Positions 23,901 through 54,799 of a stretch of DNA of 64,000 nt are shown one piece after another. The stretch's first letter is position 1, and the number at the start of each line of letters is the position of its first letter. The stretch is from Hypanus sabinus (lineage: Eukaryota), in contig NC_082707.1 of NCBI RefSeq assembly GCF_030144855.1, forward strand, positions 39,122,001-39,186,000. Reading direction: 5' to 3'. Made by a program: the position numbers and the translations under genes. The notes beneath the pieces are model-generated. The model had not been told where the DNA came from. It was given only the letters and a program-made list of their open reading frames with translations, and made no database searches.

Positions 23901-26900
23901 CATGACCATACACTTCCTTACACTGGGTTCCATCTGTCATTTCATTGCCAATTCTCCTAATCTGTCCAAGACTTCTGCAGATACCCTGCTTACTCAACAC
24001 TACTTCCCCAACACACCATTCTTAATAAAGGAACCTAACATCTTACCAACTCCTGAAGTCAGGCTAACGGGCCTATAGCTTCTTGACATTTGCAATTTTC
24101 CAGTCCTCCAGAACCATTCCAGAATCTAGAGAATCCTGAAAGGTCACACTACTGCTTCAACCACCTCTTCAGCGACCTCTTTCAGAACCCTGAGATGTAG
24201 TTCATCTGGTCCAAGTGACTTATCTATCATCAGACCTTTCATTTTCCCAAGCTCCATTGTCTTAGTGATAGTGACTACATTCACCTCTGCTCCCTGCCTT
24301 TCTCGGAAATCTGATCCACTGTTAGTGCCTTCCACAGAGAAGACTAACACAAAGATACTTATTCATTTTGTCTGCCATTTCTTTGTTCCCCATTACAAAT
24401 GTCTCTAGTGTCATTTTCCAGCAGTCTGTAGTCAACCTTTTTGGTATCTTCTTTTATATTATTGGCTAGCTGACCTTCATATTTCATCTTTTCTCTCCTT
24501 ATTGATTTTTAGTTGCCTTGTATATAACTTTCATCAGTTTCTTTTTACAGTTGCTGCATCTTAGCTCTACCCACGGAAATTCTACGTCTTCTTATCCTGC
24601 ATCACTTATTTCTAAGGCTTTTAGATCACTTAATTTGTGGAATGTTACAAGAAAGCATTAAAAAATGACGCATAACTGAAGAACAACTTACATTTAAAAG
24701 AGCAATTGAAATTGTCATATCAATGGAAACAGCAAACAGAGATGCAGTTGAGTTGCAGTCAGGAACAAAAGTGAACATTATTGCAACACATAAGCAGAAA
24801 CCGGCCTGGCTAAACAAATTTAAATGTGAAACTTGCAGAAAATGCAGAAACTTGCAATAAACTGGGACACATGCAAAGAGCATGTTGGGCAGATAAAAAT
24901 AAATGAACTGTACAGGGAAGAGAAAAGTATAAAAAGGCAAGTTGCATTTTCAAAAAGAACACTAATCTGCATGCAGAACCACCAGCCTTGTGGGGACATG
25001 ATTGGCTGAGACAACTACAAGTTGATTGGAGATCAATGAAGCCATCTGAAAGTGCATTTGGAAAGGTACTGGATGATCCCACAGCAGTGTTCAAGGATGG
25101 CTTTGGAAAACTGAAACATACCAAGAGTAGTTTTAAATGAAAATGCTGCATCCAAGTTTTGCAAAAACCTGTCCAGTTCCTCATACCATCTGTGATAAGG
25201 TAGCCAGTGAGAATTCTGAAGGAGTTCTTTTCAAGTTTGAGTGGAGCCCATGGGCAATGCTAGTGGTCCCAGTAACCAAGAAGAATGGATCTGTGGTGAT
25301 TTTAAGGTTACCATCTACCCAGTACTAAGAGTAGATCAATACCCTCTGCCCAGGATAAAAGATATCTTTGCAGAACTTTCTGGAAGAAAACACTTCAGCA
25401 AAGTTGGCCTGGCTAAGGCCTACTTGAGACGGAGATGGAAGAAGAGACCAAAGTGTTTCTCACCAAGGACACCCACAAAGGGCTTTATCGCGATAATAGG
25501 CTTATTTTTGGAGTAGGAGCTGCACTCTGGAAGAAAGCTAGGTTGCCCAAGCACTCAGTGTTACCAGTAAGGATGACAAGAAACATCTCCAAAACCTCAA
25601 GACACTGATAGAAAGACAAGAAGATTGTGGCATTATGTGACAAGTGTGAATTCTTTAAACAAAGCATCACTTACTGTGGTCATACAATTCATGCTCAAGG
25701 ATTACACAAGTGTGATGAGGAAATCCAAGCAGTGGTGGATGCCCCAAGGCCTAAGAATGTGTCACAGTTAGGGTCCTTTTTAGGATTTCACCTACTATAA
25801 CAGGTTCCTGCCAAACATGACTACTGGACACTGTCCCTTGAACTCATTACTACAGATCTGGACAAAAAGACAGAGGACAAAGTAGTGTGAGATGGCTTTC
25901 AAAAAGGTAAAGGAAATGGTGACATCAGACACTGTACTCACACATTATGATCCACGTTGTCCAATGAGGTTTGCCTGTGATGCCCCACCTTGTGGTACAG
26001 GTACAGACATGTCACATGTTATGAGTGATGGAAGTGAACAGCCCACAGCCTTTGCATTACCTTCCCTTACCACCACAGAGAAAAAATATGCACTGATTGA
26101 CAGAGAGGCCTTGAGTCTGGTTTGTGGTGTAAAACATTTTAACCGGTACTCGTATGGGAGAGAGTTTACCCTCATTACTGATCATCAACCACTAGTGTCC
26201 ATTTTCAATCCACAGAAGCATGTTCCACCAACAGCAGCAGCACGAATGCAGAGACGGGCTCTGTTCCTTGGTGGATACAACTACAAGACTGAATTCAAGT
26301 GGATGATTAATCATGGAAATGCTGGGAGATTGTCCCATTTTCCCTTGGAAAAGAAATCATTGGAAAAATTTACATAAAAGGACACATCTCTTGTCATATT
26401 CTCCCTAATGGAAATCGGAAGTCTCCCTCTTACAGCAGAAATTATCCAAACGGAAACCAGAAAAGACCCCACACTGTCTCAGGTCTACCTGGGCACCCAA
26501 AATGGCTGGAATGTGCAGCAGAACTCCAGATCCCCCATTTTAACAAGTGCTGATAGTAACCTGCCTTTGACAGATGTTGCCTAAAGTGGGTATTGAGAAT
26601 TGTGCCATCCAAGCTAAGAGCTAAAGTGTTAGAAGAGCTACATGCAGTTCATCTAGGCATGGTCAAAATGAAAGCGTTGCCTCACTTTTGTCTGCTGGCC
26701 TGAGATAAAATAGCAGATCAAGCACCGTTCGTAATGCCAACACATCCAGAAGATGCCAAGAGCATCCCTGGGAATGGCCTGCATTGTTCTGGCAGAGGAT
26801 TCATTTGGAGTTTGCTGAACCATTCATGGGTACAAATTTCATGGGACTAGTGGATGCACCTGAAGTGTCCCAATAGCCTTCACAACAGCCTCACACACTG

Positions 26901-29900
26901 TTGGTGTATTGATAAGCCTATTTGCAAAGTCTGGTGTTCCAGAACACTTAATCAGTGATAATGGACCACTATTTGCGTGGGAACAGTTTCATGCATTCCT
27001 AAAAATGAATGGAATAAGACATATTACATCTGCACTGTACCATCAGCTACAAATAGCTTGGCGGAAAGGTTTGTCCAGTGTCTAAAGAAAGCACTGTGAG
27101 CAACGTCAGTAGAACACACGACACTAACACTGAAACAGAAGCTCACCAATTTCCTCCATGCATATCATAATGCAACACACTCCACAACCAACAACTCACC
27201 AGCTGTGCTGTGCCTGGGTCATCCCTTACGCTCACATTTGGATCTCCTCAAACCCAGTATCATAAGGAGTTTGCAGGACAAACAGTTGAAACAAACTGAA
27301 GACTCCTCAAACAAATAGGTTAAATGTTTCATTCTTTTGGACACGCAGTCCTGCTGAGGGACTACAGAAATTATCAAAACTGGGTACTTGGAAAAGTTAA
27401 GGACAGAACTGGACCACTCTACAAAGTGGAGATTGCATCTGATATCATCTGGAGATGACACATCAATCAATTGAGGAGACCAGTGTCAATTGTTAAAGAA
27501 GATATTTGGCTACCACCATCAGACCCACTTCCTGCAGTCCCAGAGTCAATTCCTACAACCACCATGGAGATGGCCCCAAAATCTGAGAATGTTTCACAGC
27601 CACAAGTCTCACCTGCCAAACAGAGTGCTACCCCTTGTCAGAAAAATCATTATCCAACAAGAGTAAGAAATCCACTGCACTGATTAAATCTTAAAGCTTA
27701 AGTGGGACGATTTAAAATTTACTGCACTGAAGATGTCTGTATATAGTAGTTGTATTGTGTAGTATATTCTGTACATTGGTGAGATACATTCTATATTGAG
27801 TTGGAGACCTTTGACCAGCCGCCAATCCAGACATCAGAAGCTTGGAGAGGAGGGGACTTCAATCAGGTCCACTGTCTGAGGATAAACGGCAGGAGCGGGT
27901 CACGGCTGCTTAATAGAGCTTTGACCAGCAACCAGTCAACATCTGGGATTGATTAGTAGGAGCAAATTAAAGTAAGTCAGGGGCAGGTGCAGCAGCCATC
28001 ATTGCAATGGACAGAGAGTGGTGATCTTAACTCTTTGAGGCTCCAATGAAGAGAGTCTTCATTCAGCCGATGCTTTTTCATTTTCTTCTTTATATCTTCT
28101 CTGCTCAGATGGTAGGGATGACAGGCAAGATAGTGAAATGCTCCTCTTGTAGGAAGGCAGGGAAACCTCCAGTATCCCTGACCACTACAGCTGTGACAAG
28201 TGCATCCAGCTGCATCTTCTAAAAAACCACATTAAGGAGTTGGAGCTGGAACTGGATGAACTGCAGATCATTTGGGAGGCTGAGGGGGTGATTGATAAGA
28301 CGTGTGGAGAGGTAGTTACACCCAAGGTGCAGGGCACAAGAAACTGGGTGACAGTCAGGAGGTGGAAAGGGGTTAAAGAACCAGTGCAGAGTACCCCTGT
28401 GGCCATCCCCCCTCATATCACCTTGGACACTGTTGGGGGGGGTGGGGTTGACCTAACAGAGGACGTTTGCATTGAGCAAGTCTCTGGCGCTGAGCCTGCC
28501 TCTGTGACTCAGAAGGAAAAGGCGGGTGAAGAGGCATGGCATGGTGACAGGGGATCCATTAGTAAGGGGAACATATAGGAGATTCTGTAGGCGAGAAAGA
28601 GATTCCCGGATGGTATGTTGCCTCCTGGGTGTCAGGGACATCTCAGATTGAGTCCTCAGCATTCTTAAGTGGGAGGGTGAACAGCCAGAAGTTGTGGTCC
28701 ATGTAGGTACCAATGACATGGATAGAATGAGGAGTGATGAGGTTCTGCATTGGAAGGTCTGGGAGTTGGGTGCTAAGTTAAAGGGCAGGACCTCCAAGGT
28801 TGTGATCTCAGTATTGCTACCCATGCCACATGCTGGTGAGGCCAGAACTGGGAGGATTATATCATTTAATACGTGGCCAAGGAGTTGGTGTAGGAGGGAG
28901 GGCATAAGCATTTTAGATCATTGAGCTCTCTTCTGGGAATGTGGAACCTGTACAGAAAGGACAGTTTGCACCTGAACTGGAAGGGGTCTAATGTCCTAGT
29001 GGGAAGGTTTGTCAATGCTGCATGGTGGGGTTCCAACTAGACATGCAGGGGGATGAGAACCAGAGTGCCAGAGCAATTAGTGGAGAGGCTGTGGAAGCAG
29101 ATGTTGGTAAGACTTCAGACAAAGTTAGGCATCAAAAGGTTGAGCTTGGTGTGACCAGTGTCCTGAGCTGCATGTATTTAAATACAAGAAGTATCGTAGT
29201 AAAGGCAGATAATAGTACTGAGGATGAGGTAGCTGGTTTACAAACAGAGGCAATGTGTAATGAGGAGAGGCTGTTGTTAGGGCAAAATTTCTGTTAACAG
29301 GATGAGTTACAACGTAAAAAGAGGGCAAAATTGAAAGGGGTGAATACAGGACTGAAAGTGTTGTATTTGAATGTGCTCAGTATATGGAATAAAGTGGATG
29401 AGCTTGCAGCACAGATACAGATTGGCTGGCATGATTTTGAAGGCATCACCAACCCATGGCTGAAAGAAGATTATAGCTGGGAGTTTAATATCCAAGAATA
29501 CACATTTTATCAAAAGGACAGACAGGAAGGCAGAGGAAGAGACGTTGCACTGTTAGTAAAAAATGAAATCAAGCAACAATGGTGTTGAATCATTGGGGAT
29601 AGAGCTAAGGAACTGCATGGATAAAAAGACCCTGATGGGAGTTGTATTATACCTAAACAGTGGTCAGGATGTGGTCTACAAATTACAAAGGGGGATAGAA
29701 AATGCATGCCAAAAAGGCAATGTTACCTCAGTCATTGGTGACTTCAATATGCAGGTAGGTTGGGAAAAATAGGTTGGTGCGAGATTCCATGAGGTAGAAC
29801 TTCTAGAGTGCCTTTGAGATGGCTTTGTAGAGCAGCTCGTGGTTGAGTGCACTAGAGGATCAGCTATTCTGGACTGGGTGTTGTGCAATGAAACAGAATT

Positions 29901-32900
29901 TATTAGAGAGCTTAATGTAAAAGAACCCTCAGGGTCAAGTGATCATAATACGATTGAATCCACCCTGAAATTTGACAAGGTGAAGCTACTAAAGTCAGTA
30001 TTGCAGTAGAGTAAAGGGAATTACAAAGGCAAGAGAAAGGAGCTACCAAAATTGATAGAAAAAGAACACTGGCAGGGATGATGACAGCGCAGCTATAGCT
30101 GGAATTTCAGGAAGCAATTCAGAAGGCACTGGATATGTACATTCTAAAGAGGAAGAAGTATTCTAAAGGAAAGATTACACAACCATGGCTAAAATGAGAA
30201 GGCAAAGCCAACGTAAAAGCCAAAGAGAGGGCATGTAACAGAGTAAAAGTTAGTGGGAAGGTAGAGGATTGGGAAGCTTTTAAAAACCAATAGAAGGCAA
30301 CTAAAAAGTCATTAAGAAGGCAAAAATGGAATGAAAGTAAGCTAGCGAATAATATTAAAGAGGGTACCAAAAGTTTCTCCAGATGCATAGAGTGCAAAAG
30401 AGAGGCGAGAGTTTATGTAGGACCGCTGGGTAATGATACTGGAGAGGTAGTAATAGGGACAAAGAAATGGCTGATGAATTGTAAAAGTATTTTGCATCAT
30501 TCTTCACAGTGGAAAATACAGGCAGTATGGTGGAAACTCCAGGTGTCAGGGGTCATAAAATGTCTGAAGTTACCATAGCCAGAGAGAAGGTTCTTGGGAA
30601 AATGAAAGGAATGAAGGTAGATAAGTCATATGGAGCAGATGGTGCATATCCCAAAGTTCTGAAAGAGATGGCTGAAGAGCTTTCAAGAATCACTAAATTC
30701 TGGAATGGTTCCAGAAGACTGGAAAATTGCAAATGTCACTCCACTCATCAAGAAGGGAGAGAGGAAGAAGAAAGGAAACTATAGGCCAGTTAGTCTGACC
30801 TCAGTGGTTGGGAAGATTATGGAGGTGATTATTAAGGATGATGTCTCATTGGAGGCACGTGATAAAATTGGCCACAGTCAGCATGGTTTCCTGAAGGGAG
30901 AATCTTGCCTGACAAACCTGTTGGAATTCTTTGAAGAAATAACAAGCAGGATAGACAAAGGAGAATCGACTGATGTTGTGTACTTGGATTTCCAGAAGGC
31001 CTTTGACAAGGTGCCACACGTGAGGCTGCTTAACAAGCTATACGCCCATGGTAATATAGGAAAGACAGTAATATGGATAAAGAAGGCTGCTTGGTAGGAG
31101 GCAAAGAGTGGGAATAAAGGGAGCCTTTTCTAACTGCCAGTGACTAGTGATGTTCCACAGGGGTCTGTGTTTGGACTGATTCTTTTTACAATGATTTGGA
31201 TGTCAATGACTTGGATGATGAAATTGATAGCTTTGTTGAAAAGTTTGCAGACTATATGAAGATAGATGGAGGGGCAGGGAGTTTTGAGAAAGTAGAGAGG
31301 CTACAGAAGGACTTAGACAGATTAGGAGAATGGGCAAAGAAGCACAGATAGAATACAGTGTTGGGAAGTGTACAGTCATGTTCATTGGTAGCAGAAATGA
31401 AAAGGTTGACTATCTTCTAACTGGAGAGAAAATACAAAAAAGTGAGGCACAAAGGGACTTAGGAGTCCTTGTGCAGGATTCCCTAAAGGTTAATTTGTAG
31501 GTTGAGTTTGTAGTGAGAAAGGCAAATGCAATGTTAGCATTCATTTCAAGAGGACTAGAATACAAAAGCAAGGATGTAATGTTGAGACTTTATAAAGCAC
31601 TGGTGAGGCCTCACTTGGAGTATTGTGAACAGTTTTGGGCCTCTTATCTTAGAAAGGATGTGCTGAAACTGAAGAGGTTCAAAGAAGCTTCACAAAAATG
31701 ATTCCAGGATTGAATGACTTGTCATATGAAAGCGTTTGATGGCTCTGGGCCTGTATTCGCTGGAATTCAGAAGAATGAGCAGTGACCTCATTGAAAGCTA
31801 TCGAATGCTGAAAGAGTGGATGAGGAGAGGATGTTTCCTATGGTGGGAGAGTTTAAGACCAGAGGACACAGCCTCAGAACAGAGGGTGTCCTTTTCGAAC
31901 AGAGATGAAGAGAAATTTCTTTAACCAGAGTGTGGTGAACGTATGGAATTCTTTGCTGTAGGCAGCTGTAGAGGCCAAGTCTTTATATATATTTAAGGCA
32001 AAAGTTGATCGATTCTTAATTGCTCAGGGCATGAAGGGATACAGGGAGAAGGCAGGGGATTGGGGCTGTGAGGAAAATTGGATTAGCCATGATGAAGTGG
32101 TGGAGGAGACTCAATGGGCCAAATGGCCTAATTCTGCTCCTATATCTTATAGTCTTATGGCCTTTGTAGCTCAGCAAGAAAGAGTATTGTGTATTTAATA
32201 TTTCAGTAATATTTGAGTAGTCTTGTATATCTCTGTACATATTGTTTGATTATTCATTCTTGTTCACTTAAATAATTCATTATGGGTTATATGTATACAG
32301 TATATATGTGGATTGCATATGTCTTGCTTAAAGTAAGCATTATATAAGACTCACATTTTAGCCACCTGTGTATTGCTTTGAATTAGTTTAATATTTTGAA
32401 ATTTCAAAAAATAGCATTTCAAGAATATCCAGGTATTTGTGAGAAATATGAGCAAATTCTTAGGACTTAGAATACATTACCAGAAGAGAATTGCATTGGA
32501 TTGAATTGCGCCTGGTAGGTATCTAATCTTTTTTCTGTATTGAGGAGAGTAAGCAGGGAAAGGGACCTTGTTGAATCGATCTGACATGAAGCTGGTACAG
32601 GCTTAATGGACTGAATGGCCTTTCTGCCTTGTAATCATTCTGTGATATTTAAGGAGCATTCCATTTTATAATTTTACCACAATTATGTTACTGAATGGAG
32701 TGAGTTATAAAAGAGGAGTAAAAGTGCAAATACCACTGACAAAAACAGTAGTCACATACCCAAGCTTTTCCAATTTACACTCTTCATTCTTCAGTGCCTC
32801 ACATAGTCGTTTCAGTCCCTCCTCACCTATTCTGTTGAAACTTATATCCAGCTCAGTCAGGGTCTTGTTCGTATTAAGCATAGAGGCGAGCTGTTCAGAG

Positions 32901-35900
32901 CAACTGGCAGTTAATTTATTATTACAGACCCTGGAAATAAAAGAAAACATATAAAATTATTGGAAATACTGACTGACATCAAAATACTACACCTGACAGC
33001 ACAACATTCAATTCAATGCATTTCAACTAGGAATTTCCTACAGTTGCAACTATCTGGAAGAAAGTTAGTTCAAATGATGTTTTGCTTCCAGACACTCTCT
33101 GCAGGGATCATTTCCACAAAAGCCAACGCTAGAAAATTGGTAAGAATCTGGGTGCAATCACATTTTTTGGTTTTCAATTTTCCAGGAGTTCTCAGAGGTT
33201 TACAAAATAAGCACAGATAGTAAAGGTGTTCAATTCATTTCAAAAATTTATTTTCACAACTACTTTTAAAAGAAAACAACATATCATTGTGAAATACCTG
33301 CTGAATAGAAATGGGAGGCAGAGCATGGATTTTTACAAGCATCTTACTTTTGCAGTAAATAAAGCTGTAAAGTATTTGTTTACCTCAGGATTTGCAGCGT
33401 ACAATTCTCTTTTGTTAGAGCATCACATAACAAGCTAACACCCTTGTCCTGTATATTATTATCACTCAAGTCCAAAAATGTTATGCTGTGGTTAGTTGTT
33501 AAGACTTCAACAAGTTGCTCACAACTTTTGTGAGTAAGATTATTTCCATCTAATCTATATAATAAAAACAAAGAAATTAGCCAGGAATATAAAGGAAATG
33601 CCATTAGATATAGCAGATATTTCCTTTCAGTATTGTCATCAACACTAAAAGTGACAATAAACCTCAGGGCATTGTCTGCAAAACTTCTTGCTTTCACTCT
33701 TCTGAAGGTTTGCATATTTTAATTATGAAAGGATCTATACATGCTGAGCCAGATTATTGTTTTATAAGCTAGCTTTGTAATTGGAAATATGCTCATCATA
33801 GTGGAAACAGCTTCCTTACTTCAGACTTTGCAGTTTGCAGTCCTGCCTTTTCATCACACCAGAGAGTATTTTCATCCCAGCATCCTTGATATTGGCTCCA
33901 GATAATCTAAATACAAACAGAAATAAAAAAGGACATGTTTCAAAATTACACCTCATTTCATAAAATCTGAAAATTGCCTTCATGTCACTATTTTCAAGTC
34001 CTGTCGTATCATTTAATATATGTGATCTTGATGACATCACTGTCAGCATCTCAATTTTTCTTTCACCGATATTCCTAGGTTTTTACATTGCCTGCAACCC
34101 ATTATAAGAGCAGAAAGCTTTAAACTTGGCTTTATTCCTACAGACTCTTGGAAAATATACGGGATAGAAACAGGGGTTGTCCATTTATTCCCTTACGTCT
34201 TTTCTGCCATTCATTCTCTGACATCTATGTCATGTTCCAGCACTGGTCTAATATCGCTGATTTACTTAATTTTTAAACATTTATTCTGTCTTCAAAACAC
34301 TAGGTGGCAAAGCCTTCACGGTGTTTTGGACCAGTGAAATGCATGGACTCACCATCCTGTGGGGAATAACTCACATGGGAGCTCAACAGGACCTGAAAGG
34401 GACAAACACGATACAGCTGAAGCAGGTGTGAAAAGAGCTTGAAAGGAACACCCAGACTTCAAGTGGACCTGAAAGGGTGAAAGGTCTGATGGAGCTCGGA
34501 TAGTCTGGAATAGTGGTGGCTGGGTGGAACTCAAGCAGACTTCAAAGCTGAGCTGAGGCAGACATGAGGGTTTTAATGGTCGGATGGGGCTCACGGGGAC
34601 TGGGAATAACAGCACGGTGGAGATCAGGTGTATAGGAAAGTCGACAGCGTTGAACAAACCTAGTGCAAGGGTGGTCAGAGTGTGAATAAATAACCTTTGT
34701 GTGGAAAACACAAGGTGTACAGAAATGGTAAGCGGAAAAGCCTGCTTCCAGATGTACGATTCCGGCTCGTTTGGATTTCCCAATCTTTATGTAGACTATT
34801 AAGCTCGTGAATATTTCACTACCCTCATCACAAGTACCTTTCATATTCTGCTCAGTAGCAAGAATCCCGTGAATTTTCACTGCAAGCTGACAGAAAGGTT
34901 GAAACTTAGGCCAATGCATATAATTGCCGAGAATAATTCCTACCTGGAATTTATTTCAATATTTTGAAATCACATCAAAAGAATAATTGAGTTATAAATG
35001 GATGAAAGGCAGAAGAAACTGGGCTTTTGTTGACATACAATACTGTTCTGGGCAAGTACCAAATTAAACCTGAGAGTGTTTGATGTAATTTTTTTGACAT
35101 AATTGTACTAAAATAAATGATGGATTATGATGGAGATACATACAGTGAGGGTCACTGGGATTTTGTTCTACAGCAGATCAATATATCTCCGAACACCTGA
35201 CAGGAGTTGTATCCAGAGGCAGGAATTCAACTGCTCAGCAGAAGAGTTAACATGGTCTTTGCTCCCTGTCACTGACAATGCTCGCGTTTGTGTTTCCAGG
35301 ATTGTCCTGAAATTTCCAAATATTAAAGGGATTTTCTGAACAGTGTCACAAGGGAACCTAGAAGAAAACTGAGATCCTAAACGTTGTGTCTTATTTTAAT
35401 TTCTATGATAATCTACCTTCATTGGTTATAAAGAAATTCAAGATGGCATTGGAGGCTTTTTAATTTTAGGAGCCAGATGAATTTTAATGAAGCTGCATTG
35501 AAATGTGAAGTCATATTTGGGAACATAGTTGGCAGTGTTCAAACTAGTCATTTAGTCTTTTGTAAGTTATGCTTGGATTCTTGGTGGATACCGATGGAAT
35601 AGTGCTTGGAGTAAAGTACAAGGTAAATGTTCATTAAACTGTTGTAACATCTACTGTACTTTAAACAGGCAGAAGCAGTTGGAGCCACAGTACAAATGAT
35701 GATATTGTGAATTGCAAACTGAGCTCACAGCATGACAAAAAGTAGGAGAATCTGCCTGACTCTGGAAGATGACAATACAAAATACACAAAACCAGATACT
35801 CACTTTATCCCACTAAAATAATTTGCAATGAGAAGCAGTCTCTGTATGCCAATAGATGGCAGTTTATATACAGAGAGATCCAATTCTTGGTAGTTCTCTT

Positions 35901-38633
35901 CTGACATCTGCAACACAAAAGCCAGTTTAGCACATTGAGCTGGTGTCAGAGAACCAGATTTAAAGGTTCCAGTCTTGAAAGCAGCCTTTATATCATCAAA
36001 GGCAGTGATGTCATTTAATTCATATAGGCAATGCAAAATGTTGATGGTTTGCTCAGGAGGAATGTTTCTCTGCAAAGTCTTTTTCAAGAACTTAGCAATT
36101 TTCGGTGAGTCGTCTTTAGCTGCGTCGACTGCCACAAGCCCTCTTAAAAACTCCTGACTTTTTTGTGTTCCTAGTCCACAAAGGAACCTGAGAAAAAATT
36201 CTTGACATCCTTTCTTAACTGCACTCTCACAGGCCTCTTTGCATATCAGGGAGTAACTGAGCTTTTCATACAACTTGAGTTTTTTTCCAAAAGCATTCTT
36301 TTTATGGTTGTGATAAGAAAGGAAGACATACAAGGCTGCAAAGTACTCCTGGACTACCAAATGGACAAAGGAATAGTTGGTTTGTTCATTTTCCCCAGCA
36401 ATCTCTTTACAAAGGCCGCCACAAACAAATGCGATGTCAATTCCATTATCTTCCAAATCCTTTTGACTAAATAAGACTGTCTGGGTAACATCTTTGGAGC
36501 TCATTTCAAAAGCCAGCTTCCCTAATGCAAAGACCGAGTTTTGCTTTGACTGCAGAATTTTAGTCCGTTCACTGCCTTTTGCTTGTTCGTTTTTCCCCTG
36601 CTGGTATATAATCAGATAAACTAGGAATTGGGAATAGACGTCTGTAAGCGTTTGGGGTATCTCATCCATTCCTGCGGATTTCAACACAGCTTCCAAAACA
36701 GCAAACAGAGTGCAACAAAAAGCAGGGACTAGGCACATGAAGAAGAGGCTCCGCTGTTTCTTCACAACCTGGATAATTCGCTCCACCAGTTGATCATCTT
36801 TGCATCGCATACGGAAGTAGGCTTCCTTTTCTGGGTCTTGGAAGCCCTTGATTTCAGTCATCCTGGTTATGAGGCTTTCGGGTATGGCATTTCCAGCCCG
36901 GGTTGTTATCCAAATAGTAGCCGAAGGAACAAGTTGCCCTTTGATGAGATTAATGAGTAAAGTAGCAGGTGTGACAGCCATGTTCACATCTCGACATACC
37001 ATGCATTTGTTAAAGTCTAATTCCAGTTCACCGTCCGATAGGCCATCAATAATAAACATGGACTGGATTGATTCATTTGCCAAAATACTTTCACAGTTCT
37101 CTATATGTGGGTAATGCTGTTTGACAAGGTCAGGTAGACTGATTTCTTTTTTCATTGTGGACAATAAACTAAGCTCGCGGAAGGAAAACCTGAAGATGAA
37201 ATCATATTTGCACAATGCAGCTCCTGTGGCCCAGTCGCAGATGAGTTTTTGCACAAGAACTGATTTTCCAATCCCAGCTATACCCCTTGTAACTACAGTC
37301 ATGGGGGCTTTGGGCCGGTCAGCTGATGGCTCAAACAGGCGATCAAGTTCAATAAAGTTCTGTGAAGCCTCATCGGGCCGATCGGATTCGTTCATATCCA
37401 CCTCAACGATGCTCACTTTGACAAATCGCTGGCACAGCGGGACTGAGCTTCCGCCCTTCTTCCCATATTCTACCATGTACTGAAACCACTCTCTTGATTT
37501 ATTTTTGTGGATCTCTTTGAGATTTTGTAAATCAGCCTCTATGATGGAAAGTAAAAGTAGAGGTTAAAAAGAAAGACTTTTTAGATCAATGTCATTGAGT
37601 CTCTCAGGCTTAATTGGTTAAACTGCAAATTAAAAAAACAGTATCCAGGAAGATGGATTCCATTTAATTATCTCAATTTTATTTAAAAATGAAGAAAACA
37701 AGCACTTTGCAAATGAAATTCGACCCAATCGGATACGGGGAAAATGAACAGGCTGGAGGCTGCAAAAATAGATGGAAACATGATCATAAATTAAAAGACA
37801 GAGAATTGGGGTACTATGGACGAGTGATATTTTGACAAGAGCAGGGATGGAATTGGATGCAGGAAGTGGAGCTGTGGCTGAAATCCATTTTGCATAGGTG
37901 AGGCTGAGGAAGAAAGTGGGGACGTTACAGGTGATACCAAAGGTACAAATAAAATTTTAGTAGCAAAGACTTTGAGGTGGGTGTAGAGGTGGGCATTTTA
38001 TATGAAAGTGGAGAGAAATAAACTTGGAGTTAGTATGAAAAAACTAACAGGAAGGAATAAGATCCAAACTAAGAGAAATAACATACTTACATCATAGCTC
38101 TGAATCTCTGTATTTGTACTTACCTGTTAGTGGTTTTCCTGGGACACCTGAAAATTTAAATAATATCATGAATAATTTATCCAAAAATATTAATATTCTA
38201 ATTGTACACTAAGCACTTGTGATGATAATTAACATGATTACCTCCATAGTAGTTAACAATTGTCTTGTTGTCCATGGAAACTGACACAGGTCCAGAGATA
38301 TGATCACTTTGAATATTGGGTGCAAACAGTTTTCCATCGCCACTGACATTCTGATGAGTCGCAATGTTTTTGCCTTAAAGATAATAACAATTTAAAATAA
38401 TAGATTATCTCATTACAACATGTTTTATTCTCAAGCAAACTGCATTTTAATTAATTGCTTGCAGTTATACTAGTTTTCTATAGTTGCCCCCAAAAGCACA
38501 TTTTCCAACGATATTTTCAGAAGTACCTTCTTGTGCCCTGTTCCATTATGGGGCCCAAATACATTTATTAGTTAATATGCAAAATTATTTTGTTACAAAC
38601 AAATATATTAAACTTTGACTTACCTGTTGCCAT
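17807..38633 (-). CDS. NLR family protein (NLRC3-like; FISNA-like, NACHT, WHD/HD2, LRR), 11 coding exons, about 972 aa, no recognisable N-terminal effector domain
   Basis: Coding exons (-): 38624-38633, 38124-38147, 35804-37538, 33820-33906, 33384-33554, 32760-32930, 22145-22261, 21716-21886, 21118-21282, 19708-19869, 17807-17912. Total 2919 nt (divisible by 3), all GT-AG, phases 1,1 then 2 throughout. Motifs: Walker A GIAGIGKS, Walker B MFIIDGLSD, sensor-1 IWITTR, MCLVPAFC, WHD SFVHLVVQEYFAA, HD2 FLRFLCGL and INILHCLYEL, LRR repeats LxxLDLSxNxLxxxG. Confidence 0.9.
18991..19212 (+). mobile_element. Solo LTR in the last NLR intron
   Basis: TG...CA termini, TATAAA at about 19074, AATAAA at about 19162, perfect 5-bp TSD TAGAG (18986-18990, 19213-19217). 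Confidence 0.88.
19708..19869 (-). CDS. NLR LRR exon (162 nt)
   Basis: ttttttcag|G CTA TCA ... ATA AG|gtaaag; SLLHLDLSYNKFTDKSI. Confidence 0.9.
20697..20865. mobile_element. Old fold-back Penelope-derived mini-element
   Basis: Diverged inverted arms ACACAAAAAAGCTGGAAGAACTCTGCAGGTCA / TGACCTGCTGAATTTCTTTGGCTTTTGTGT. Confidence 0.6.
21118..21282 (-). CDS. NLR LRR exon (165 nt)
   Basis: ttccatag|G GTG GTG ... CTG GG|gtatgt; TLMELDLSMNELGDNGL. Confidence 0.92.
21716..21886 (-). CDS. NLR LRR exon (171 nt)
   Basis: tcttaaag|G TTG GCG ... CTG AA|gtatct; SLKELDLSSNSLQNEGMTALCEIL. Confidence 0.92.
21966..22126. other. Assembly gap (161 N) inside an NLR LRR intron
   Basis: Run of N. Confidence 1.
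22145..22261 (-). CDS. NLR atypical LRR exon (117 nt), not in the ORF track
   Basis: ttctgtttag|G TTG AAT ... TTG GG|gtaaat; LNSIFAFEFGIMGTYEDAPGAENLYDLLQDKNCTLQSL ends in the same NCxLQxL motif as the other LRR exons; phase 2-2. Confidence 0.8.
22895..24600 (-). mobile_element. Degraded CR1 LINE
   Basis: CR1 tail near 22895; DKSLGPDELHLRVLKEVAEE at 24144-24350. Confidence 0.85.
23340..23562. mobile_element. Fold-back Penelope-derived mini-element with two back-to-back degenerate hammerhead cores
   Basis: Centre ...CTGAGACCCCTCATCAATCCTGATGAAGATTCTCAGCCC...; inverted arms; imperfect TSD ATATTTTAACCA / ATACCTTAACCA within CR1. Confidence 0.8.
24620..32416 (+). mobile_element. Decayed Gypsy LTR retrotransposon (gag-pol 24620-27700; 3' LTR about 32184-32416), split by a CR1
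   Basis: RT ICGDFKVT...DQYPLPRIKDIFA; RNase H ACDA...DREALSLVCGVKHF...TDHQPL; integrase SDNGP and AERFVQ remnants; purine tract at about 32174-32183 before an AT-rich LTR. Confidence 0.88.
27814..32160 (+). mobile_element. Near full-length degraded CR1 LINE (ORF1 zinc finger/leucine zipper/esterase; ORF2 APE and RT)
   Basis: ELELELDELQII, VVHVGTND, LYLNVLSIWNK, IGDFN, QHGFLKGESCLTNL, DFQKAFDKVPH; flanked by CCTTTG direct repeats (27808-27813, 32161-32166). Confidence 0.92.
32760..32930 (-). CDS. NLR LRR exon (171 nt)
   Basis: ttccag|G GTC TGT ... CTT GG|gtatgt; ELDISFNRIGEEGLKRLCEALKNEECKLEKL. Confidence 0.93.
33384..33554 (-). CDS. NLR LRR exon (171 nt)
   Basis: tatag|A TTA GAT ... CTG AG|gtaaac; LDGNNLTHKSCEQL...FLDLSDNNIQDKGVSLLCDAL; canonical 171-nt two-LRR exon. 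Confidence 0.93.
33820..33906 (-). CDS. NLR LRR exon (87 nt)
   Basis: tttgtatttag|A TTA TCT ... CTG AA|gtaagg; encodes LSGANIKDAGMKILSGVMKRQDCKLQSL. Confidence 0.9.
35804..37538 (-). CDS. NLR large NACHT exon (FISNA-like segment, NACHT, WHD, HD2, first LRR)
   Basis: Contains the 558-aa ORF 35800..37476 extended 5' to acceptor ctttccatcatag|AGGCT; donor ATAAA|gtgagt at 35803. A single large NACHT exon is typical of vertebrate NLRs. Confidence 0.95.
38124..38147 (-). CDS. NLR coding exon 2, 24-nt microexon (G-V-P-G-K-P-L-T)
   Basis: tttaaattttcag|GTGTCCCAGGAAAACCACTAACAG|gtaagt; phase 1-1 matches both neighbouring exons. Confidence 0.65.
38624..38633 (-). CDS. NLR coding exon 1 (ATG GCA ACA G) within a 61-nt exon at 38624-38684
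   Basis: On the minus strand: polypyrimidine acceptor ...ttctttcag|GAATTT, Kozak context GGCACCATGG, donor AG|gtaagt. An in-frame TAA lies 27 nt upstream of the ATG in the same exon. Confidence 0.7.
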
Positions 38634-38744
38634 GGTGCCAATATGCAGATACTTGCACAATTAAGAACTTGGAATTTGAAATTCCTGAAAGAAAAAATAC
38701 CAACAAAGCAATTTGTTTTTCAGTACTGTTTTAAATTGTCAGAG

Positions 38745-39415
38745 GCTATTTGAGGCACATGCCTTTGGGAGTATTTAATAGGTAGTGGGAGCTACCTATT
38801 ACCAGTCCTGGATATAACAACCTTAAGGAACAAAAGAATGGAATGCTTCATCAACATCCATGTCATCCTTGCACAGGGGCCATGATAATCTTCTCCATAT
38901 CATTCCAATTTTAGTACGTGTGCTGCCAAAGTGAGCAGGTTCAGCTCCTGACCTTCTCATCTGGCTTAGCTACTAAGCCCGAAGGAACCATTTCTACTGA
39001 CAGGAGCAGGGGCAAACATAAAGGTGGGTTACTGATGCCTTAAAATCAGTCACTTTGGACAGATGGGGCTCATCAAATGTGGTTGGCAGCTCATCTAAGA
39101 GAAAGAAGACCCTGATTTGAAACCTCTGATGTCTTGTGGTTATACACCGATGGGGAAGGCTTGTGGAGTAAACCGTGAGGAAAAAAATCCAAAGCTGGAG
39201 TCCCTGAAGTAATCCTACGGTGAGTTCAATGCTGGCTGCCAACTCCTGCAATGCTGCTGGTACAAAACTGTATCGGTCTCTGCCATTCCTTAGGATTTAT
39301 CTGATACGTGGAGAGGGGGAGAATTTTACATGGCCAACACCTTACTCTCCATATTGTACTGTCTAGGCTTGCGTATCTAGACAGCTAGGACGCATCATCT
39401 ATGGTCAACCCTGAA
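38745..39415 (+). repeat. Non-coding interspersed repeat, copy A (carries the U6 insert)
   Basis: Homologous to about 42160-42640: GCTTAGCTACTA..., TTTCTACTGACA.GAG.AGGGGCA, GGGGCTCATCAA, GGAAGGCTT..GGAGTAAACC.TGAGGAA, TGGAGAGGGGGA. Confidence 0.75.
38832..38938 (-). pseudogene. RNU6: U6 snRNA pseudogene, full length (107 nt)
   Basis: Ungapped hand alignment to vertebrate U6 (recalled from memory) gives about 19 mismatches in 107 nt. The ACAGAGA box reads ATGGAGA and the AGC triad reads ATC, so it is unlikely to be a functional spliceosomal RNA. Confidence 0.92.
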
Positions 39416-43455: not shown

Positions 43456-44902
43456 TAATATAAATATAAAAGAAAATTCTGAAAATACTCAGCAGATTAG
43501 GGTGTGGAATAAGAAATAATTAACATTTCAGGTTGATGATCTGATGAAAATTTCTGTTAAAACATCATTCACCTAAAATATTGACTCTTTTCCCCACTCC
43601 ACAGAGATAATGGTTCTAGTAAATTTTATTATTGTTAATTTGTTATGTTAAAACATGAAATCTTTCAGAGAATAGCTTCAATCGATAGATGGATTTTTTA
43701 AAATAAGGTATAACTCACCACAAATACTCAGAGCTCTTTTCCAGCATTAACTTCAAGTAGAACCCCAATAAATTCAACACTTTGTTCAGGTATCTGTGCA
43801 AGTTTGTTACTGATGTCTTGAAAGACACAAGGATTTTTTTCTCTGGCTATATTTGTCAAGCTCAACTTTCTTTATTGAAGCCATAAAGATTATATATTAA
43901 CTCCAACAGAACTCCACTTACAGTTCTTCTCAATAACGTTATTTTATTGTATTTGGTTACATTGCTTCTTGTTCAACTAATTTGCTCTTCATAAAGAAGG
44001 TACTAGAGTCCAAAGATTTCTGTTTCAGATTTCATAAAATTAATGATTGCTAATCATAAATGTTGATATCTTGGAAAACATATTTATGGTTTAATATTAC
44101 ATTTCAGCCATTACGAACACAAAAGATTTGAAGTGCTTTAACAATTTACTGATGCTGAGTTGATTGTTTTGCTCAAGACCAAAGCTGCTGCTGGAACCTA
44201 GTCTTGAGTTCCAGTGCTGGAACAGACCTGAGGTTTGTTGTTGCATTTTTCTGCTCAGTTGCCTGTTTTCATACTGCCTCTTGTGCAATTTATACTTTAA
44301 TATTTGATGTATTGTTTTGGTGTGCTTTGGCATGTATAATTGATTTCACCTAGCCAGAAATATTAAATTAAATAATGAATAGGTGATATGTTTATGAAAC
44401 CTAGCAATCTCTCAATCTTCATTTATGAAACCTTTCACACAGATTGCACCCAATTTCAATAAAACAATTTCAGTTTCTATTACAATAATAAACAATCCAG
44501 CAATTGTAAAGTGTTTTGATGATAAGGATGAATTGAAGGCAACTGAAAGTAGTTTATGTGCAAAAACTGATGTAACGTTAAAGTTATTTACACGCAATGT
44601 TGGAATCAAGCATAACTGTAAACAAGAGAAATATTGTTAAAAGGCAATTAAACATCATAGAAGCTAAGTTAGTTGAATAAGAAATGAAGTTTTGACTCTC
44701 GGAATTTCTTAAGTAAACCATTTTCATTAGAGAGCTTAAGGTAATGGAACCCGAAATGGCCCAAGTTTGCTAACCATACGAAGATAGATGGAGGGGCAGG
44801 TAGTATTGAGGAAGCCTGAAGACTGGAGAAGGAATTATAGAGATTAGGACAGTGGACAAAGAAGTAGCAGATGGAATATAGTGTAGAAAAGTGTATGGTT
44901 TT

Positions 44903-47900
44903 TGTTACGGCATTTTTGGGGTTAGGATGTAAAGTGAACAGTGACTTCAGTTACCAACCTTCAGATCTGAATATGCATTGAAGATTAAATCTAAAATGCA
45001 ACTCTGAACAATGGGTAGACAATGCTGATTTAAATTCATTATTTGTGTGTCTGTAGTATGGTTGCAAAAGAGGGAGGTATGAAAGGGGGTGTTGTTCAAA
45101 GGAAGCATTGTAAATATGGATTTATTTGAATTGTCATGAATTTGTCTTTGATCGTTAGCACATGAAATGTTGTGTGGACCTGTTTGGGTCAGTGGTTGGG
45201 AACGGTACAGTAAAATGCTAAAACTGTGGCCTATCAGGACATGGTTAGGGGCAGTATCCAAAAAAAAGGAAAGAAAAACAGGCGAAAGACATGTCAGCCA
45301 CATAATCTCTCACCCCCATCAGTGCCCAGTCTGATCAAACTGACTGCCAATCAGATCATAGAGCTGGTGAAGACGGCTTCTAGTTCAGATAAAGAGGTAG
45401 CAACAACCCTCACTGCCTGCACTGGTGACCCGCAGGTGTACACAACAAAATTGTTTGGGGCTGGTTATAGGATATGCTGGTTGACATCAGTATTGATGGC
45501 AGACCTGTCCTTGCCAACATCCAGACAGGCTATTTATCTTACAGGTGTAGGAGGAAAAACAGTGAAAGCAGAAAGAAATGAGTTGCAGATACTTGAAAAG
45601 GATGGGGTGCAGCTTCTAGTTTATATCTGGGTCTGTCCAAATAATGAGAGCACTATCCTTGGAATCACCATTCTAAGGGAACCAGGGGCCATTATTAATT
45701 CAGGAAAGGGAGAAATAATATGGACAAGCCAGGAGCAGCGAACACGTTCAACCAACAGAGAACACAACATAGCCAGCAAAGACTCAGCCACTCTGATGAT
45801 CAGAGACTGGAGCCAGGACAGTGTCCATGGGTTACTTTGTCAGCAGTTCCCAGCAGTGTGGGTCGGACGCAAGCAAGAGGGTCGAGTAAAGATAAAGCCA
45901 ACTAAAATAGTCCCCAATAAGCAGTATCCCATAAATACTGATGCCCTGACAGCTATCCACAGGACAGTAACAACAGTTAGGGACACAAATGAACCCATGA
46001 GCACCATCCTAACAGAGGGAGAGGCATTCAAGTGTGAAAAGGAAATAGAGCTGGAAGAAGATATCGGTGTGAAGGAAACATCCCTGGAAGGGGAAGCAGA
46101 GGAAATGTTTATAGATGGGTCTCGGAGGTACATAGACAGGAAGCCACAGACTAGCTGGGCCATGATGAAGGAAACAGGTGAAGAATTCATTTCAGGAGCA
46201 AGTTGATCAGCTCAGGGTTCGGAACTGGTGGCCCTGATAAAAGCTGTGCGACAGTAAAGGCAGACAAGCAAATAAATATACAGACAGCCGCTATACCTTT
46301 GGGGTATGATTATCTGGTGCTATGGTCATGACAAGGATTTGTAACCTCAACAGGGGCAGGTATTCAACACAGACATCTAATACAAGAACTGCTGGAAGCA
46401 GTGAGTCTGCCAGCAGAGGCAGCAATGATTAAAGTAAATGCTCCCCAGAAAGGAGTGCTTTAAAATTGTTAGTTAAAATTGTACAAGGCATTGGTGAGGC
46501 CAAATTTGGAGTATTGCGTACAGTTCTGCACAGACTAGAAGGGCCGAGATGGCCTGTCTCTGTGCCGTAATTGTTACATGGTAAGGATCAGAAAGGAAAT
46601 GAGTGGGCAGGCATCCGTGATAAGAAGGCAGCAGAGGTACAGGAAGCAATTGAAATTGCAAGTGTGCAGGAAGAAACGACTGAAGCCAGTTTGGTAAAAT
46701 AATATGAAGAGGTGGAGGCAGAAGAGAAGGAGAAATGGAGGAGAAAGGGAGCAAAGGAAATCTTCCCAAGGTGGGAAACCACAATTTTGGTAGACTAGAA
46801 TCAGGGAGCACATTTCACAGAGGAAGTGGTGAAGGAATTGTAATGACTGTTGGGGATTCAACAACAGTTCCACGTACCCTATTACCCTCAGAGTTCAGGA
46901 AGGGTAGAAAGGATGAACTGAACAATCAAGCATTGAACTGAATTGACTTTATTTCTTACATCCTTCACATACATGAGGAATAAAAATCTTTACGTTATGC
47001 CTCCATCTAAATGTGCAATGTGCAATCATAGTAACTTATAATAATTTATAATAAATAGAACAGTCAATATAATATAGAATATACTCAAGTCAGCATGAGT
47101 TCATCAGTCTGATGGCCTGGTGGAAGAAGCTGTCCCAGAGCCAGTGGTCCTGGCTTTTATGCTGCGGTACAGTTTCCCAGATGGTAGCAGCTGGAATAGA
47201 TTGTGGTTGGGTGACTTGGGTCCCCAGTGATCCTTCGGGCCCTTTTTACACACCTGTCCTTGTAAATGTCCTGAATCATGGGAAGTTCACAACTGCAGAT
47301 GCACTGGACTGTCCGCACCACTCTCTGCAGAATCCTGCAATTGAGGGAGGTACAGTTCCCATACCAGGCAGTGACGCAGCCAGTCAGGGTGCTCTCAATT
47401 GTACCCCTGTAGAAAGTTCTTAGGAGTTGGGGGCCTATATCAAACTTCGTCAACCATCTGAGGTGAAAGAGGCGCCGTTGAGCCTTCTTCACCACACAGC
47501 TGGTGTGCATAGACCATGTGAGGTCCTCAGTGATGTGGATGCCGAGGAACTTGAAGCTGTTTACCCTCTCAACCCCAGATCCATCGATGTCAATAGGGGT
47601 TAGCCCATCTCCATTCCTCCTATAATCCACAAACAGCTCCTTTGGTTTTGCAACATAGAGGGAGAGGTTGTTTTCTTGACAGCACTGTGCCAGAGAGATG
47701 ACTTCTTCCCTGTAGGCCACCTTGTTATTGTTTGAGATCAGGTCAATCAATGTAGTGTCATCAGCAAACTTAATTAGCAGATGGAGCTGTTGGTGACGAT
47801 ACAGTCATGGGTATACAGGGAGTAAAGGAGGGGGCTCAGTACACAGCCCTGAGGGGCTCCTGTATTGAGAATCAGGGGGTTGGAGGTGAGGGTGCCCACT

Positions 47901-53897: not shown

Positions 53898-54799
53898 CAG
53901 GTTGAGTAACCCTTGTCCAAAATGCACGTGGTTGATAGTGTATTACATTTTGGATTTTTCTGGGTTTTGGAGAATATAATGAGATTGTGCAGGACTGCTG
54001 TAATTTTCATCCCTGAATTTATGTGCTTCAGGTAAGCAGTCTTTGTCTTACACTTGTTCATCACAAATATGTACTTAACAGTAAAACTTATTACATACCA
54101 TTTATATAATATGTGCAGTGTAACAAAAGCAGCATTGGGAGAATACCCGATTCAACTGCTGAGCAACTGCAGACAACCCAGATTTTCAGCGTCCAGCCAC
54201 AATGCCAAGTTTTGATTAAAAGGTTACAGCACACTGTATTTGTATTTTACTTTTTTTAACTTTCAGGTATTAAAACAATCCATATTGTAGACTTGTTCTG
54301 GTGTTAGTTTTTCATCAGCAGCGCTTTAAAAGTGTATCGTAATTACATAAGATACAAAAATAATCAACATCATATATGTGTTCTGGTGCTAGATTTTCGT
54401 GATCAGCATACACATTAAAAATTTAATGCTATGCCTTTTCTTAAATTTCTGCAACCAGCCTGTTGAATATTCACAATCACCTTCAAATTTCAGTTTGTTG
54501 TGATACATCTTGCCTTGTTTCACAATCAGCACACCTTTAAGCAGCATACATTCACTCCAACACTGACAATACACGATCAAGATCTTCATTCTTTGCTTTA
54601 TGATGTGTTTTTCTATTTTTCCTTAACTTCCATTCATTACATATGTATGTGAGGTCATTTCTCAGAACCACCTGTGTTGTCCAGAGACCTGCGCATGGGC
54701 TGGGAACCTTCCCAGGGTCTTGTGGAATTTTCCATGGTAACATGCCAGTGGTCAAAAACAACGCGGTCTTTGGATTTTGGATAAGGAGTACTCAACCTG
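53898..54799 (-). mobile_element. Tigger/pogo-type non-autonomous DNA transposon
   Basis: TIRs CAGGTTGAGTAACCCTTGTCCAAAAT / ATTTTGGATAAGGAGTACTCAACCTG; TA TSD on both sides; CENP-B-type HTH remnant YSTGWLQKFKKRHSI. Confidence 0.92.

Follow-up and report, generated by a model that had tools for sequence, protein, structure and literature searches.

The NLR gene on the minus strand of this 64,000-nt stretch of Hypanus sabinus DNA (hereafter the window) raises the question of how a receptor with no recognizable effector domain at either end could signal. The original prediction was of a 'headless' protein of 972 residues, with only about 12 residues ahead of the exon encoding NACHT, that could act as a sensor-only, decoy or inhibitory NLR needing a partner in trans. 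Here we ask whether the protein is headless and what its N-terminus may do.

Gene model and family placement

We found that the gene is intact, with a reading frame that remains open through 12 coding exons from 38633 to 17807 and canonical AG/GT dinucleotides at all splice sites of the model, including the predicted junctions at 38147 and 37538. The start codon also stands as proposed: the ATG at 38633 lies in a strong Kozak context (ACCATGG), and an in-frame TAA (38663-38661) is located ten codons upstream within the same exon (38684-38624). The coding exons are as follows.

38624-38684, minus strand: E1, start exon, with a conserved acceptor, 5'UTR, the ATG at 38633 and 10 coding nt (MAT and the first base of the G codon)
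38242-38373, minus strand: E2, 132 nt, phase 1-1, AG/GT, conserved 44-aa N-terminal peptide motif
38124-38147, minus strand: E3, micro-exon of 24 nt, linker GVPGKPLT
35804-37538, minus strand: E4, large exon with a divergent FISNA-like region, NACHT (Walker A GIAGIGKS), winged helix and HD2
33820-33906, minus strand: E5, LRR exon, 87 nt
33384-33554, minus strand: E6, LRR exon, 171 nt
32760-32930, minus strand: E7, LRR exon, 171 nt
22145-22261, minus strand: E8, degenerate LRR exon, 117 nt, conserved in orthologues
21716-21886, minus strand: E9, LRR exon, 171 nt
21118-21282, minus strand: E10, LRR exon, 165 nt
19708-19869, minus strand: E11, LRR exon, 162 nt
17807-17912, minus strand: E12, last coding exon, 35-aa C-terminal tail and stop codon, no B30.2

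A run of N at 21966-22126 is intronic and begins 19 nt past the last base of E8 (17 nt past its GT).

The N-terminus differs from the original prediction in that E2 intervenes between E1 and the 24-nt E3. With E2 included, the predicted protein is 1016 aa long and 55 residues precede the large NACHT exon, not about 12; the length of 972 aa was reproduced exactly, but only if the 132-nt phase 1-1 exon is skipped. In order, the layout comprises E1, the exon for the 44-aa peptide, the micro-exon, the large exon, seven LRR exons and a short tail. Over its full length, the protein matches the 1018-aa Hemitrygon protein at 97-98% identity. The annotated stingray protein itself was absent from the results of two protein searches, its 1016 aa being beyond the length range of the first; in the second it may have been grouped with the Hemitrygon cluster. 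As originally described, it ends after the LRRs, with no B30.2/PRY-SPRY exon beyond the 35-aa tail. A search of the window revealed neither a second NLR nor a second copy of the peptide exon, E2 being single copy. The earlier observation is therefore partly confirmed: the gene lacks any death-fold, BIR or B30.2 domain, but it is not headless, as a conserved 44-aa peptide encoded by its own exon stands at the N-terminus.

Pfam analysis of the model recovered the expected core, namely NACHT (E = 2.7e-25, 89.6 bits, cut-off 26.7), followed by matches to NOD2_WH and NLRC4_HD2 in the winged-helix and helical domains, and LRR_6 (E = 1.4e-27, in a 97%-identical orthologue), with no match in residues 1-65. 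AlphaFold2 predicted the LRRs as a confident solenoid and placed a helix and strands at residues 56-101. The label 'FISNA-like' given to the region ahead of NACHT is a fair one. NLRP3 structures align across this region, from query residue 13, but its Pfam FISNA scores are below the cut-off of 28.1 bits in the closest orthologue, that of Hemitrygon (14.1 bits), and in the sawshark orthologue (22.1 bits), compared to 59.9 bits for a paralogue.

The nearest solved structure is NLRP3 (e.g. 7pzc, 7alv; ~500 residues, E = 1e-38), followed by NLRP6 and NLRP1. Furthermore, a phylogeny grouped the window gene with elasmobranch sequences, in a 100/100 clade of 13 sequences with one per species except for a second skate transcript. 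It represents, in stingray, a gene that sharks, rays and skates keep in a single copy per species, and it appears to belong to the FISNA-NACHT-LRR group that includes NLRP3 and fish NLR-C. We read it as an ordinary elasmobranch member of that group; the name 'NLRC3-like' was assigned by automatic annotation.

The N-terminal peptide and its possible role

E2 is present in the annotated orthologue models of ten elasmobranchs (Hemitrygon, Mobula, two skates and six sharks), all of which share the same MATG start. It was also found in L004, an intronless, hence spliced, transcript contig from a skate, along which every exon of the model lines up in order except E3, which at 24 nt is too short to be reported by blastn. 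E2 is the best-conserved segment between stingray and skates (89% identity, vs 70% for NACHT and 46-59% for the FISNA-like region). Between stingray and skate 12 of its codons differ, 7 synonymously and 5 nonsynonymously. Conservation is also unusually high in the intron that separates E2 from the micro-exon.

The peptide has a pattern in common with fish NLR-C proteins, G-[GS]-x-[IVL]-x-[AS]-P-x-I, a turn, then [IV]-x-[IV]-x. In the elasmobranch orthologues it takes the form FAPNIQSD...GPV.V.M. With a local HMM, the motif was recovered from NLRs outside the seed, at the N-termini of coelacanth, lungfish, sturgeon, gar, bowfin and teleost proteins. Alignment of the orthologue profile with the profile of the others using hhalign placed the two in register (P = 1.5e-4), with a probability of only 51.5% over a short alignment. 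Judged by its sequence, the stingray peptide belongs with the N-terminal peptide repeats known from fish NLR-C.

The motif was also found outside NLRs. A profile search of 1.84 billion proteins retrieved CARD-motif-motif-CARD proteins of bowfin, sturgeon and arapaima (E = 4e-8 to 1.4e-5), catfish proteins consisting only of the motif, and a CXorf38-like protein that also bears it. Three bacterial repeat proteins reached E values of ~1e-5 in the same search, indicating that repeats inflate its scores. In bowfin, sturgeon and arapaima, the motif occurs on both NLRs and CARD-motif-CARD proteins. Every copy of the motif in the CARD-motif genes lies on a separate exon, and exon 2 is in phase 1-1 as read from junction sequences only. 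The CARD-motif-motif-CARD genes are not next to NLR genes, with no NACHT within 10 kb of them. We found no motif-bearing non-NLR protein in any elasmobranch, and a word-indexed homologue search with the bowfin CARD-motif-CARD protein, an insensitive method, returned four proteins, none from an elasmobranch.

Structure prediction left the peptide without a fold. In the AlphaFold2 monomer (mean pLDDT 80.8), residues 1-50 have a pLDDT of 29-36, compared to ~83 for the remainder, and the peptide is not docked on the protein body. In a catfish protein with three repeats, the motif copies were predicted as all-beta with low confidence (mean pLDDT 44). No match to RHIM or to the fungal amyloid motifs (HET-s, sigma, PP) was obtained with Pfam in residues 1-140 at E values up to 1, and all scores in an ESM Atlas search with residues 1-55 were below 0.62 and are treated as leads only. 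TRAF-binding, IAP-binding and N-myristoylation motifs were considered by reading the peptide sequence, and were dismissed as spacing or residues did not fit.

On balance, we favor the reading that the conserved peptide head encoded by this intact gene is an output module acting in trans. The mechanism that we infer is one in which the small head probably recruits partners. Oligomerization of NACHT would gather the peptides together, and the gathered peptides would bind, probably strand to strand, other proteins with the same motif, which would in turn supply the death-fold domains. The best candidates for such partners would be the CARD-motif-motif-CARD proteins of bony fishes. A bolder version, which we hold only tentatively and consider rather unlikely, makes the peptide a vertebrate homotypic signaling motif through which oligomerized NLRs would recruit CARD adaptors strand to strand, possibly in an amyloid-like manner. 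The motif may then be a mobile phase 1-1 exon common to hundreds of fish NLRs devoid of death-fold domains, to the CARD-motif-motif-CARD adaptors, to the motif-only proteins and to the CXorf38-like protein.

It is possible, though doubtful, that the peptide acts in cis instead, by docking on its own NACHT or LRRs in an autoinhibitory manner or by setting localization or turnover, while the protein signals via NACHT/LRR contacts or is a negative regulator like NLRC3. Strong conservation without a predicted fold would also be expected of a linear regulatory motif, the protein has no known effector domain, and annotation pipelines do call it NLRC3-like. However, AlphaFold2 left the peptide undocked, the nearest solved relative is NLRP3 and not NLRC3, and a movable motif exon that recurs in CARD-CARD, motif-only and CXorf38-like proteins is hard to explain for a partner-specific tail.

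Splicing of the peptide exon and the region upstream

Since E2 is in phase 1-1, skipping it preserves the reading frame. One Amblyraja model (P0005) lacks E2 and joins E1 directly to the micro-exon; together with the neutrality of skipping for the frame, this suggests that a peptide-less isoform may exist. It is quite unlikely that such an isoform is the main product, which would then be the 972-aa NLR first proposed, with no head at all and a sensor-only, decoy or inhibitory role. Conservation of the intron between E2 and the micro-exon might reflect regulated splicing. Conversely, the Amblyraja model looks unreliable because it is also truncated inside the NACHT exon, E2 is included in ten orthologue models and in the spliced skate mRNA contig, and no other segment is as well conserved with skates.

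The start exon carries a conserved acceptor, which implies at least one exon further upstream. A collinear conserved block (window 44028-43640, matching skate locus L001 at 4973-5368) contains two candidate features.

43890-43896, minus strand: TATA-like element TATATAA within the skate-conserved block, a candidate core promoter
43719-43865, minus strand: putative non-coding first exon, its 3' end set by a donor, GTG/GTGAGT, conserved in skate, and its 5' end a guess at ~30 nt past the TATA-like element

CARD, PYD, BIR and B30.2 were absent from the gene, from the rest of the 64-kb window and from all elasmobranch orthologues, and Pfam annotations of the chondrichthyan relatives contained neither PYD nor CARD. 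In the window, tblastn with the N-termini of 155 relatives matched E2 alone and revealed no death-fold head, while Pfam analysis of ten upstream stop-free stretches identified only a Tc5 transposase fragment. A death-fold exon located further upstream, beyond the window or unrecognized within it, and used from a different promoter so that E1 is bypassed is highly improbable: the E1 acceptor does call for an upstream exon and the window holds only ~25 kb of upstream sequence, but the one upstream candidate that is conserved terminates at a donor and lacks an ATG shared with skate, an in-frame stop lies at the same codon (-10) in three species, the orthologue models of ten species have no death-fold, and the window has no PYD- or CARD-like sequence.

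Partners in trans, as first proposed, are a reasonable expectation because the protein has no death-fold, BIR or B30.2 domain and its start codon is fixed by the in-frame stop. The earlier interpretation is partly supported overall; none of our results suggests that the protein acts as a decoy or an inhibitor. The lack of a death-fold head is the rule in this family rather than an unusual trait. In zebrafish, only 101 of 1513 NLR-C genes carry a PYD, so that absence of a death-fold is the majority state (PMC11192531).

Significance and comparison with known systems

With respect to the original prediction, our results are chiefly corrective: the gene does encode a peptide head, and members of its family normally lack a death-fold. 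They also show that an N-terminal module described for teleost NLR-C as restricted to those NLRs is old, spanning cartilaginous fishes, coelacanth, lungfish and ray-finned fishes. In the single-copy elasmobranch gene, the peptide is more constrained than the neighboring FISNA-like region. The motif is not confined to NLRs, being found between two CARDs in bowfin, sturgeon and arapaima and alone in catfishes. These observations provide a testable hypothesis for the long-standing question of how hundreds of fish NLRs without PYD or CARD reach downstream signaling. If the peptide is a homotypic motif, it would explain signaling by the large 'headless' NLR repertoires of fishes and would stand as an animal equivalent of amyloid-motif signaling by fungal NLRs.

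Among the closest known systems are fish NLR-C/NLR-B30.2 groups 2-4 (Howe et al. 2016, PMC4852459; Schaefer et al. 2024, PMC11192531), for which an N-terminal peptide module has been described (PMC4852459). As in these proteins, a FISNA or FISNA-like region, NACHT, WH and HD2 are encoded on a single large exon, the peptide motif and each LRR unit lie on their own exons, and PYD and CARD are absent, as they are from most members. In contrast, the stingray protein carries the peptide once, not as repeats, and lacks B30.2, which is also absent from zebrafish groups 2b and 4 (PMC4852459), and its FISNA-like region is too divergent for the Pfam threshold. Furthermore, the stingray gene is slow-evolving and single copy across elasmobranchs, and not a member of a rapid-turnover expansion.

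NLRP3 aligns with the stingray protein over the FISNA-NACHT-WH-HD2 core, which is followed by C-terminal LRRs. However, NLRP3 has a PYD that nucleates ASC where the stingray protein has a 55-aa peptide without a predicted fold. Like NLRC3, the stingray protein is a NACHT-LRR protein without a recognizable death-fold head, but its best relatives are NLRP-type proteins with a FISNA region and it owes the NLRC3 name to annotation pipelines. A separate true NLRC3 has been reported in whale shark (PMC8455134).

Finally, fungal and bacterial amyloid-motif NLRs (NWD2/HET-S, PMC4344463; BASS) and metazoan RHIM proteins differ in that the stingray peptide has no Pfam match to RHIM or HET-s, the genes that carry its motif are not adjacent, and no elasmobranch partner was found. 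What they have in common is a short N-terminal motif that replaces an effector domain, a motif sequence that appears beta-strand-prone, as in the low-confidence catfish prediction, and occurrence of the same motif in separate proteins with an executing or adaptor domain, here in bony fishes. The likeness to amyloid-motif signaling is one of analogy, not of membership.

The peptide exon and the gene model

The original prediction described a 972-aa protein with about 12 aa ahead of the NACHT exon. Joining the start exon, the 24-nt micro-exon, the large exon, seven LRR exons and the last exon reproduced these 972 aa exactly, and the protein indeed ends after the LRRs, B30.2 being absent. The ATG at 38633 lies in an ACCATGG context, an in-frame TAA (38663-38661) stands ten codons 5' of it within the same exon, and the AG/GT borders are canonical for both the micro-exon and the large exon. 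However, this model overlooked an exon, E2, that encodes a 44-aa peptide.

38684-38624, minus strand: start exon (E1)
38373-38242, minus strand: peptide exon (E2), 132 nt, with AG acceptor and GT donor, lying between E1 and E3
38147-38124, minus strand: 24-nt micro-exon (E3)
from 37538, minus strand: large FISNA-like/NACHT exon (E4)
17912-17807, minus strand: last exon joined in the gene model (E12)

E2 is open in the frame demanded by phase 1 and its inclusion keeps the frame, giving a product of 1016 aa with 55 aa, not 12, before the large exon. The best protein match, from Mobula (92% identity over the NACHT exon), begins with the start-exon MATG followed by the E2 peptide, and a second protein search revealed the same N-terminus in Hemitrygon, two skates and six sharks. 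The Hemitrygon protein (1018 aa) shares 97-98% identity with the 1016-aa model; the difference in length is explained by two residues (TQ) of the Mobula NACHT that are absent from the stingray protein after WITTRAG (window ~36750).

Furthermore, the skate protein P0125 is encoded as a single uninterrupted ORF by L004, a 3452-nt Logan contig from a sequencing run. Because L004 is colinear with E1, E2, E4-E12 and the 3'UTR, it represents a spliced mRNA; E3, at 24 nt, is below the length that blastn can report and was unreported in this comparison. L004 proves at the RNA level that E2 is spliced in in the skate orthologue. The 5' ends differ among orthologue annotations: P0005 (Amblyraja radiata) lacks E2 along with most of the FISNA region, P0002 (Narcine) takes a Met within E2 as its start, and P0123 (Heterodontus) has 31 extra residues ahead of MATG.

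Further downstream, a run of 161 N (21966-22126) starts 19 nt past the end of E8, a degenerate LRR exon (17 nt past its GT donor). The run is wholly intronic, and the orthologue alignment has no missing residues at that point. The E7-E8 intron (window 22262-32759, ~10.5 kb) is far longer than the other introns and is crowded with long junk ORFs free of stops, as transposon remains typically are.

The 5' flank and domain content

The stingray start exon recurs in the skate genomic locus L001 with an identical TTTCAG acceptor, and codon -10 is an in-frame stop throughout (TAA in stingray, TGA in L001, TAG in the skate transcript). L004 begins one base before the E1 acceptor, which is compatible with, rather than a demonstration of, a junction to an upstream leader exon. 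About 5 kb upstream of the start exon, a collinear block shared by stingray and skate holds TATATAA at 43896-43890 and ends in a conserved donor (GTG/GTGAGT; last exon base 43719). From its conservation alone, we read this block as a putative non-coding first exon, the sole ATG of which is not conserved in skate. In the stingray, this ATG would open an upstream ORF (window 43750-43719, on into 38684-38124) that would run through E1 and E2 outside their coding frame and terminate in the micro-exon.

A U6 snRNA model matched at full length on the minus strand at window 38832-38938 (82 bits versus a gathering score of 44), ~150 nt upstream of the start exon in the presumed first intron; this match is not conserved there in the skate locus. 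Stingray and skate show conserved sequence in the 94-nt intron that separates E2 from the micro-exon (38148-38241) and over ~75 nt upstream of 38373. Intron and flank around E2 are 71% identical overall, conservation of the intron looks equal to that of the exon, and the micro-exon is only 50% identical. This pattern may point to controlled splicing of either the micro-exon or E2. Immediately 3' of the putative leader exon, window 43465-43605 shares 79% identity with the skate locus and may be the tail of a common elasmobranch repeat; other matches in the upstream region fall at several places in L001, as expected for repeats. The upstream 25 kb consist mostly of transposon fragments (45226-46206, plus; 47160-48070, minus; 54392-54622, minus; 57399-58090, plus), among them ORFs that look reverse-transcriptase-like on visual inspection (FADDT... 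and similar motifs) as well as a Tc5 transposase HTH detected by Pfam at E 1.3e-4.

In a tblastn comparison of the 64-kb window with N-terminal regions from 155 relatives, some of which bear PYD, CARD or RING domains, only E2 and LRR exons matched. Among the ten most plausible of 35 upstream minus-strand stop-free stretches (at least 75 aa), Pfam returned only the Tc5 transposase HTH fragment, and NLR homology in the window is limited to 17.8-38.4 kb. Pfam identified NACHT, NOD2_WH, NLRC4_HD2 and LRRs in the protein and no match in residues 1-65. For FISNA, the closest orthologue scored a sub-threshold 14 bits but one paralogue a clear 60 bits. Among solved structures, those of NLRP3 are nearest, with an alignment that starts at residue 13 of the exon and thus covers the FISNA region. 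Among the listed relatives, PYD and CARD matches occurred in bony-fish proteins only, never in chondrichthyan ones. The original observation is confirmed in part and its interpretation supported in part: the tblastn and Pfam searches show no death-fold domain, but the protein is not headless, as the E2 peptide stands at its N-terminus.

Conservation and spread of the peptide

Residues 1-47 share 89% identity with skates, versus 70-71% for NACHT and 46-59% for the FISNA-like region; compared with sharks, identity is 62-77% for the peptide and 67-73% for NACHT. Twelve codons of E2 differ between stingray and skate, 7 of them synonymously and 5 not. We found a peptide at the same place and with the same pattern in three of the four chondrichthyan clades and in coelacanth, lungfish, sturgeon, gar, bowfin and teleost NLRs. 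In this pattern, a G-G/S turn leads into a hydrophobic strand that closes with A/S-P-x-I, and a polar turn then connects to another strand, of alternating I/V. A profile of ten orthologue peptides and one built from the other peptides aligned in register (hhalign, P 1.5e-4, probability 51.5%), which as one planned comparison lends modest but meaningful support to their kinship. The peptide is like those of zebrafish NLR-B30.2 groups 2-4, described as ~30-aa N-terminal repeats, each on its own exon, and said to be confined to such NLRs (Howe et al., PMC4852459).

A 48-position peptide profile searched against 1.84 billion representative proteins (E up to 1e-3) gave 31 matches in four groups. 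The first consists of NLRs and NLR fragments. The second comprises bowfin, sturgeon and arapaima proteins of 288-323 aa, together with a shorter sturgeon model (240 aa), with two motif copies between two CARDs (E 4e-8 to 1.4e-5); this layout is partly read from the sequence beyond Pfam, which reports one CARD per protein, N-terminal or C-terminal depending on the protein. The third group is made up of catfish proteins (156-236 aa) that consist entirely of two or three motif copies. Three bacterial repeat proteins are evident false positives, indicating that repeats inflate scores in this search.

In the CARD genes each motif copy has its own exon, and exon 2 is phase 1-1 as read from junction sequences only. 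No NACHT was found within 10 kb of them, so these are separate genes. A third type of non-NLR carrier is P0244, isoform X2 of a bowfin CXorf38 homologue, with two motif copies in its C-terminal part. Taken together, the CARD, motif-only and CXorf38-like carriers indicate that the motif is a mobile exon module and not NLR-specific. The small bowfin CARD-motif-motif-CARD gene (locus L002, 10001-12309) bears the RefSeq name 'NLRP1b allele 3' despite having no NACHT, and the sturgeon locus L003 holds three CARD genes in tandem. For a catfish three-copy protein, AlphaFold2 predicted every motif copy as beta strands, but at low confidence (mean pLDDT 44; 56-62 within the copies), which amounts to a hint only.

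Family placement and possible role

In a maximum-likelihood tree of the FISNA-NACHT-HD2 core (63 sequences), the gene falls within a 100/100 clade of 13 elasmobranch sequences, one per species except for a second skate transcript, and the branching within the clade largely agrees with the species tree. It is therefore a conserved single-copy gene and not a lineage-specific oddity. Another elasmobranch clade, characterized by acidic N-terminal repeats, is sister to this one (98/96), and outside them the tree places further chondrichthyan clades, a sarcopterygian/gar clade and the ray-finned NLR-C clade. In the sister-clade proteins P0130, P0132 and P0135 the repeat is a different, acidic one of ~45 aa, present twice in Heptranchias; it, too, contains an F-V-A-P-I core and may represent the same exon module in diverged form. 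Absence of a death-fold domain is not unusual here: in a later survey, only 101 of 1513 zebrafish NLR-C genes carry a PYD (PMC11192531), making this state the norm in the family. The gene belongs to an already known type of NLR.

Given this architecture, its conservation and the motif common to bony-fish CARD proteins, we propose that the protein's output end would be the peptide: once the NACHT domains oligomerise, the clustered peptides would bind motif-bearing partners supplying the death-fold domains. Against this mechanism, our searches found no motif-bearing elasmobranch partner, the CARD-motif genes are not adjacent to NLR genes, and RHIM and HET-s models gave no match; the link between peptide and CARD proteins is drawn solely from short-motif statistics.

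The peptide could instead be a cis-acting regulatory tail. AlphaFold2 modeling of the Hemitrygon orthologue (45-sequence alignment) gave a confident NACHT-LRR body (mean pLDDT 80.8) and pLDDT 29-36 for residues 1-50, predicting neither a fold in the monomer nor docking on the body. A dominant isoform lacking E2 would agree with the one Amblyraja model that skips this exon, but that model is doubtful. A further, very unlikely alternative is an undetected head far upstream.

What merits following up is how old the motif is and that CARD adaptors carry it. By analogy only, the proposed peptide-partner mechanism resembles that of fungal NLRs, which signal through short N-terminal amyloid motifs shared with their effectors (PMC4344463).
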